A stretch of DNA of 63,437 bases, counting the filler, from Bigelowiella natans CCMP2755 (taxonomy: Eukaryota; Protista; Cercozoa): the NCBI GenBank assembly GCA_000320545.1. It is 5 parts of 5 records of this genome, joined end to end, with 100 filler letters (N's around TTAATTAATTAA, not from the genome) between each part and the next. Parts side by side here need not be neighbours in the genome. Positions count along the whole stretch, not along the records: positions 9,472 to 18,942 come from ADNK01002093.1; 4 more parts are not named here. One strand, 5' to 3'. Shown one piece after another: positions 12,424 through 13,835 of this stretch. The first letter of the stretch is position 1. Every line of letters starts with the position of its first letter. The position numbers were made by a program, and so were the translations under genes. The notes beneath the pieces are model-generated. The model saw only the letters and a list, made by a program, of their open reading frames with translations. It was not told the origin of the DNA and searched no databases.

Positions 12424-13835
12424 ATGCGGAATACATTTTTTCTATCGGCTCGACAGCAGAAACGACGCGTCGTTGCACTGCTTAGTGGGATGGCGCTTTC
12501 TCTCCTCCTCCTGTTCTTGCTGCATGCATCTCCACAAAAAAGACATCAAGAAGCCCTTTTGAGGGCCGCCCCTCAAGTAGCAACAGGCGAAACCAGTGCC
12601 GGAAACTGGAAGAATGAATACAACAGAATTTCATCAACAGCACAAGAGGATACCATACGGGAGGCCCGGCAGTCTGGATTTAGAGTTTCCCCCTCGCGTC
12701 TCCTGCGTGGTGGAGGTAATTTTTTTTGGAGAAATGCGTGTTTCTTTCCCATGTGTATACTAATGATGTCTAGGAAATATGTTAGCAATAATAGTAACAT
12801 TTGAGGTAGTAGGAGAATTAGACTGCAGTCCGAACGCCCCGAATCGACCATATTGTTGTAGTAGTAGTAGTAGTATAGCAAGGTCCTAAATCCAGGCTGT
12901 GCATGAACTCAAACTGTGTACATGGGCTTGCCACTTTGCTTTTTGCTGTGATCAAGTTTATGCTATCGCTCCTCATATATCAAATTCAAACACGATTATT
13001 ATTATTATCATAACCCACCCTTACCTGATCGTATATCAGCAAGAAGCAGCGACATAGCGATGAAGCGCATTCAGGAGGAGTTGAGAGGCATTTCTAGAGA
13101 TCCTCCCGCCAACTGTTCGGCCGGCCCTACCTCTGATAGCGATATGTTCCACTGGACAGCGACTCTTATGGGACCTCCAAATAGCCCTTGTCTGTAGTGC
13201 CTGTATCATAATTACCTTCTTCTTCTTCTTCTTCTTCTTCTTCTTCTTCTACTTCATCATCATCATCATCACCATTTGCAGCAGCAGCATATTGTGTAAT
13301 ACATGTTTGAAACACCGTTGGTGGTAAATAGAAGTGAGCCTCATAACCACTCCTCTCACCTCCCCCTCCCTCGTCTTCTCCTTGTTCAAACAGATGATGG
13401 TGGACTATTCTTTCTGGAAGTTCGCTTCCCACCAAACTACCCTTTTAAGGTGCTCAGTGAAAGAGAAAGAGGGGGGGAGAGAGAAGGCGGGGGGGGGGGG
13501 GGGAGGGAAGGGAGAGAGGGAGAGAGAAACTTCTCCATCTACTCCTCATACTTGACTAAAGCATTGTTGTTTATTAGCCACCGATGATAAGATTTCAGAC
13601 TCGAATCTACCATTGCAATATAAATAGCAAAGGTGAGATCTGCCTTGACACTCTACAAAATGCATGGAGTCCCGTGCTATCGATTTCCAAGATTCTCCTC
13701 TCAATCAGCTCCCTTCTGACTGATCCGAATCCAGAGGACCCCCTTGTTCCCGATATAGCGCACCTTTATAAAACAAACAGGCAGCTGCACGACGATACGG
13801 CAAGACAATGGACACGCAAGTATGCCAGTGGCTGA
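12424..13835 (+). CDS. Ubiquitin-conjugating enzyme E2 (UBC4/UBE2D-E class) with N-terminal signal/transit-like extension
   Basis: Exons 13040-13189, about 13393-13449 and 13579-13835 give MKRIQEEL...[57 protein letters not shown]. The catalytic Cys is intact. Upstream exon 12424-12715 joins in phase 1 (GT at 12716, AG at 13038-39). Confidence 0.9.

Follow-up and report, generated by a model that had tools for sequence, protein, structure and literature searches.

The SELMA enzyme s_Ubc, described from Toxoplasma (TGME49_295990) and as the diatom ubiquitin-conjugating enzyme (E2) of the periplastidal compartment (PPC), is encoded in the nucleus and carries a signal peptide with a transit-like leader. 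It presumably works alongside a symbiont E1 and ubiquitin in what remains of the endosymbiont cytoplasm. Its E2 subfamily is 'Atg7' and its derivation red-algal (PMC12412216); no LRGG motif has been described at its junction between leader and enzyme. Cryptophytes have a UBC4/5-type E2 that is encoded in the nucleomorph, needs no leader, and serves a PPC with a retained nucleomorph (PMC12412216). LRGG directly before a functional protein is found in ubiquitin fusion precursors such as Ub-L40 and Ub-S27a, and the Ub-actin and Ub-P1 fusions of chlorarachniophytes.

For the chlorarachniophytes, no PPC proteasome or derlin is on record, and periplastid ubiquitin machinery is stated to be absent; that they lack SELMA, as an earlier sequence-only reading of this DNA had noted, is likewise stated in the literature. 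Bigelowiella natans has a published nuclear gene for a ubiquitin monomer with signal and transit peptides, and a published nucleomorph cdc48-like gene. A 2025 phylogeny of SELMA components placed chlorarachniophyte members in the s_Uba1 clade, and its authors raised the idea of ubiquitin pathways located in the plastid. Plastid proteomics in 2012 classed an E2 as cytosolic and saw no leader (Hopkins et al.); that E2 need not be the protein 58084 considered below. Our literature search, whose reach excluded Curtis et al. 2012 and some important supplements, found no published leader-bearing chlorarachniophyte E2.

Here we describe a nuclear E2 gene of B. natans, found in a window of 63,437 nucleotides (the whole stretch of DNA analyzed). 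Like s_Ubc, it is nucleus-encoded, has a signal and transit-like leader, and would act in the remnant endosymbiont cytoplasm; unlike s_Ubc, it encodes a UBC4/5-type enzyme and belongs to a green-lineage complex plastid reported to be without derlin or SELMA. Membership in s_Ubc was rejected on this classification, by an indirect comparison through the subfamily definition of PMC12412216. Its nearest counterpart in terms of subfamily is the cryptophyte nucleomorph-encoded UBC4/5, from which the B. natans gene differs in its nuclear location, its introns and its bipartite leader. The 147-aa core is about 65-70% identical to cytosolic UBC4, UBC5 and UBE2D, with the catalytic Cys, the H-x-N motif and the E1- and E3-binding surfaces conserved, but the leader of 104 aa, a long stem branch and a clade apart from the host-type enzyme set the protein off from them. 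It differs from ubiquitin fusion precursors in the signal segment and disordered spacer upstream of LRGG, where no beta-grasp domain is present by Pfam search, alignment or an AlphaFold2 model. What appears to be new, judging from the literature consulted, is a leader-bearing UBC4/5 paralogue conserved across three genera of a lineage thought to be without such machinery.

Gene structure and transcripts

The gene lies on the + strand at 12424-13835 and consists of four exons and three GT..AG introns that encode a product of 251 aa. Its features are:

12312-12423, + strand: 5' UTR, minimum extent from transcript contig ends, without upstream ATG
12424-12715, + strand: exon 1 (leader), 97 codons plus 1 nt, ending in phase 1
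12424-12468, + strand: leader n-region, aa 1-15, five K/R and zero acidic residues
12469-12528, + strand: hydrophobic core of the leader, aa 16-35, either a signal anchor or the h-region of a signal peptide
12529-12702, + strand: transit-peptide-like spacer, aa 36-93, unalignable between species
12703-12714, + strand: LRGG codons, aa 94-97, final full codons of exon 1, whose end reads SRLLRGG
12716-13039, + strand: intron 1, GT..AG, phase 1, immediately 3' of the LRGG codons
13040-13189, + strand: exon 2, ARSSDIA linker and N-terminal part of the E2, containing ATG 13060 (M105)
13190-13393, + strand: intron 2, GT..AG, with trinucleotide microsatellites
13394-13449, + strand: exon 3, core strands of the E2
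13450-13577, + strand: intron 3, GT..AG, low-complexity and purine-rich
13578-13835, + strand: exon 4, C-terminal 85 aa of the E2 with the HCN motif, catalytic Cys188 codon at 13641-13643 and stop at 13833-13835
13836-14028, + strand: 3' UTR, extent of the longest transcript contig

One spliced contig of 1015-1053 nt was assembled from each of three transcript runs, X15, X16 and X17, which come from three studies. The contigs span 12312 or 12320 to 13982-14028, and 12716-13039, 13190-13393 and 13450-13577 are exactly missing from each. They confirm in RNA the in-frame junction of leader exon and E2 that the sequence-only reading had proposed. Its description of the exon (97 codons, basic N-terminus, hydrophobic 20-mer, spacer, SRLLRGG) also stands, with the boundary moved by one base so that the exon ends at 12715. 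When words were sampled from the locus, 56-63% were present in the three transcript runs, the value expected of spliced RNA, versus 94-99% in DNA runs, as befits the unspliced form.

The assembled 5' UTR of 112 nt includes zero ATGs, and an in-frame stop lies 15 codons 5' of ATG 12424. Five ATGs stand ahead of the E2 domain in the mRNA, and since ATG 12424 comes first among them and has A at -3, leaky scanning to ATG 13060 is unlikely, and from the mRNA sequence translation should begin at ATG 12424. The public model jgi/Bigna1/58084 (EukProt EP00466, P0002) is a protein of 147 aa that begins at ATG 13060; it is 100% identical in the last exon, which identifies the window as nuclear DNA of B. 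natans, and is missing the leader. The protein collections searched hold the 147-aa model only, the 251-aa version being absent from them. At least one B. natans E2 is mis-modelled at its N-terminus in public annotation.

The public model could be correct if the functional product were a leaderless, cytosolic E2 of 147 aa and the upstream exon were non-functional or alternative. Besides the model itself, a contig of 171 nt inside intron 1 (12799-12969), assembled from run X15 only at a depth of 2.8 versus 21.4, might be taken to favor this. A transcription start within intron 1 had been raised in the sequence-only reading as one event that would undo the leader. The sole transcript form assembled, however, in all three studies, contains the leader in frame; the 171-nt contig is probably unspliced pre-mRNA or DNA carry-over. 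Minor internal starts are compatible with these data, to which assembled contigs are insensitive. The gene and intron 1 were scanned against Rfam and folded; no family matched, and the 171-nt contig has no unusual fold. The comparison with orthologues, given below, makes a leaderless product highly improbable as the functional one.

Trinucleotide microsatellites and a G/A-rich low-complexity run fill introns 2 and 3 (13205-13282 and 13459-13530), and (GT)n and trinucleotide repeats are abundant across the whole piece around the gene. A marine metatranscriptome contig (X19) covers 13620-13813 of the last exon and differs from B. natans at 13661, 13673 and 13760, all third codon positions by our codon count. 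We read the contig as a natural, Bigelowiella-like variant under purifying selection.

The E2 domain and its leader

Exons 2 to 4 form a UQ_con domain. Exons 2 and 4 match PF00179, and the E-values of the orthologues described below against UQ_con are 3e-50 and 3e-49, the alignments covering profile positions 1-139. The best PDB matches of the C-terminal 85 residues are yeast Ubc4, human UBE2D1-3 and AtUBC8 (1e-37 to 1e-33), and the region of the catalytic Cys188 and H-x-N motif aligns with HPNINSNGSICLD of yeast Ubc4. Every invariant E2 position is retained, including H, N and C, which are invariant columns in the UBC4/5 alignment. The B. natans motif reads HCN instead of HPN; this is no defect, because HCN prevails among the aligned UBC4/5 sequences, most of them from protists. 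By these alignments the enzyme is of the UBC4/5 (UBE2D) type with an intact catalytic core. An intact E2 after the leader, as first claimed, is also what the in-frame 251-aa product and its complete UQ_con domain provide.

Relative to its homologues, the protein has an N-terminal extension of 104 aa that opens with a hydrophobic segment. No other window of the protein is as hydrophobic as the 20-residue core (Kyte-Doolittle 2.4 over 19 aa), and a possible candidate cleavage site lies at this core, between LHA and SP. The stretch that follows, aa 36-104 (69 aa), is of mixed charge, with 11 K/R, 7 D/E and 13 S/T. After GG, the codon split by intron 1 encodes Ala, followed by RSSDIA and then by MKRIQEEL, with which the E2 begins. 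The leader layout appears to match the bipartite type of chlorarachniophytes, in which an ER signal and a transit-peptide-like spacer precede a cytosolic-type enzyme. A PPC class of such leaders was reportedly described by Hirakawa and co-workers in 2010, and the 10% acidic residues of the B. natans spacer would fit it.

The 97-aa leader was compared with 1.84 billion protein representatives and had no relative among them; the sole match, to a repeat protein (P0001), was judged spurious. A relic ubiquitin in the leader was considered and rejected: there was no Pfam match at E<=1, and the score of the local alignment to ubiquitin fell within those of shuffles.

Orthologues and the conserved junction

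Searches with the 147-aa model and its best relative as queries identified two proteins that stood out clearly from UBC4/5 enzymes in general. One (P0122) has 256 aa and 83% identity, and its 90% cluster includes Chlorarachnion reptans MMETSP0109 entries; the other (P0123, GAB5360343.1), from Amorphochlora amoebiformis, has 196 aa and 79% identity. Both have a hydrophobic N-terminus. The C. reptans leader resembles that of B. natans in its long basic n-region and 18-residue core, and the predicted A. amoebiformis protein has a short classical signal peptide with a site between AFA and D. Spacers range from about 24 to 66 residues, and their pairwise similarity between species is no better than that of shuffles. 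Other extended UBC4/5 matches, of 162-247 aa, were rejected as leader proteins; all of them retain Met before ALKRI, and so look like UTR read-through.

In a tree of E2 cores, the three leader-bearing proteins form one clade (support 100/99) on a stem of 0.64 changes per site. A separate clade of leaderless 148-aa proteins holds Lotharella globosa, L. oceanica, Bigelowiella longifila and A. amoebiformis (GAB5357089.1), so that A. amoebiformis carries both paralogues, one with and one without a leader. As far as this tree allows it to be read, the leader-bearing E2 is a paralogue in its own right, which evolves fast and exists alongside a leaderless UBC4/5 of the host type. Deeper placement of the leader clade, with green-algal or with host sequences, is without resolution in this tree. 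The Met at the E2 start, from which the public model begins, is Val or Ile in C. reptans and A. amoebiformis, both of which keep the leader. The leader is thus obligatory in these two species and a leaderless product is not a conserved option, and chlorarachniophytes already possess a distinct leaderless enzyme of the host type; both points weigh against the public model.

Protein searches gave no leader-bearing orthologue for Lotharella, Gymnochlora or Partenskyella, a gap that may reflect low expression or true absence. A search of metagenome contigs with a degenerate DNA pattern for LRGG-x6-A-x-KRI-xx-EL returned three chance matches without an E2; the same search also missed the known C. 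reptans contig.

The leaders bear on a second reading of the hydrophobic segment. In B. natans and C. reptans an h-region of 18-20 residues follows a long basic n-region (net +5 in B. natans), a layout that is also compatible with a type II signal anchor. Left uncleaved, such an anchor would tether the E2 in the endomembrane system (ER, Golgi or outer plastid envelope) and keep it from ever entering the PPC. By the positive-inside rule, however, the anchored E2 domain would be lumenal, where E1, ATP and ubiquitin are not expected. The short cleavable signal peptide of the A. amoebiformis orthologue also speaks against an anchor, as do the spacer, an N-terminal extension typical of bipartite leaders, and the putative leader of the divergently transcribed neighboring gene, which likewise has a long hydrophobic core. 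We consider an anchored enzyme quite unlikely and take the segment to be more probably a signal peptide.

The junction between leader and enzyme is conserved even though the spacers cannot be aligned. It reads SGRLRGG-VRANDIA-VKRI in C. reptans and IRRLRGG-ARAREIA-IKRI in A. amoebiformis, and the consensus for the three genera is (R)LRGG-x-R-x-x-[DE]-I-A. In A. amoebiformis, as in B. natans, LRGG is followed by a phase-1 intron at exactly the same place. The LRGG codons of the three species are CTG CGT GGT GGA, CTC AGA GGC GGA and TTA AGA GGC GGA, and all their differences are synonymous. Codon comparison therefore indicates protein-level selection on LRGG and supports a function for it, the kind of function being left unspecified by conservation.

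An AlphaFold2 model was made for the C. reptans orthologue, as a proxy, with an alignment of 40 sequences. It has a helix at residues 24-37, over the hydrophobic core, and is without structure at residues 45-100 (pLDDT below 50). Helix alpha-1 begins exactly at the GG of RLRGG, and the pLDDT of the E2 core is above 90. The model thus predicts that RLRGG lies at the border of disordered leader and folded enzyme, five residues before the canonical Met1 position and undocked on the E2.

The sequence-only reading had suggested that the E2 might be matured by cleavage after GG, and a deubiquitinase (DUB) of the symbiont compartment that cuts after G97 would indeed free it from the whole leader. Strict retention of LRGG in three genera beside an unalignable spacer is what such a site would show; two of the species share five residues (RLRGG) with the ubiquitin tail, and the modelled position at the disordered/folded border is predicted to be accessible. 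The ubiquitin-system context also favors a DUB, and a UCH-like protein was present in plastid-enriched fractions (Hopkins et al.). Ahead of the motif, however, there is no ubiquitin fold: the region has no Pfam match, its similarity to ubiquitin is limited to LRGG, and it is predicted to be disordered. Cellular DUBs such as UCH and USP enzymes normally recognize the ubiquitin body or fold; viral papain-like proteases are known to cut at a bare LXGG. Conservation, moreover, extends past GG into the E2, so that LRGG may merely open the conserved mature protein, and the literature search found no precedent for DUB-type leader cleavage. On balance we think it unlikely that a DUB cuts after G97. 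Whatever its function, a ubiquitin-tail motif at the junction of leader and enzyme offers a precise target for mutation.

Proposed role and genomic surroundings

We propose, with a probability of about 60%, that the leader-bearing UBC4/5 is an E2 of the PPC or nucleomorph, as its sequence features suggest. The hydrophobic segment would serve as a signal peptide that carries the E2 into the ER, and the charged, disordered spacer would act as a transit-peptide-like signal for crossing the second plastid membrane. The conserved (R)LRGG would most likely mark the border of the mature enzyme or a processing site. The E2 would then function in the PPC or nucleomorph, a sensible destination because an E2 would be useless in the ER lumen or stroma. 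Likely partners would be the nucleus-encoded ubiquitin with signal and transit peptides, the E1 of the s_Uba1 clade and the nucleomorph-encoded Cdc48-like protein. A counterpoint to this proposal is that in a lineage with no reported PPC proteasome or derlin, it is less clear what a PPC E2 would do.

A more far-reaching version would combine these elements into a dedicated, derlin-free cascade of E1, E2 and ubiquitin in the PPC, with an origin separate from that of the red-lineage SELMA system, whose E2 is matured by a DUB-type protease recognizing the bare RLRGG as a mimic of the ubiquitin tail. We hold this to be rather improbable; if true, RLRGG-directed cleavage of the DUB type would be a previously undescribed mode of removing a targeting leader.

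The leader-bearing E2, the ubiquitin with signal and transit peptides, the s_Uba1-clade E1 and the nucleomorph Cdc48-like protein together make a ubiquitin pathway of the symbiont compartment directly testable. Such a pathway bears on whether secondary endosymbioses have repeatedly arrived at ubiquitin-dependent steps, and on protein turnover within a compartment that has no identified proteasome.

The E2 locus of A. amoebiformis spans 7.4 kb and includes tandem exon-like duplications within introns. In the part numbered 9615-10907 (L005), extra near-copies of one exon occur at about 9615, 9804, 9952 and 10102, and a near-copy of the last exon at 10872-10907.

In B. natans, a divergent neighbor on the minus strand (11619-12176) starts about 400 bp from the E2 gene. 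Transcript contigs end at 12176 and 12312, which leaves a shared intergenic region of about 135 bp. The first ORF of the neighbor (11619-12020, minus strand) has a long hydrophobic, signal-like segment followed by an S/T-rich stretch, and a downstream exon at 11196-11396 reads like an aldo-keto reductase (GIGTWAWGN...). To judge by its predicted N-terminus, the neighbor may likewise encode a protein targeted to the plastid or PPC. On the other side of the E2 gene, a RIO1-type kinase gene with many introns occupies 14739-18478 on the minus strand; Pfam RIO1 matches lie at 18353-18478 and 17245-17535, and its C-terminal exon, at 14739-15002, is of basic/acidic composition.
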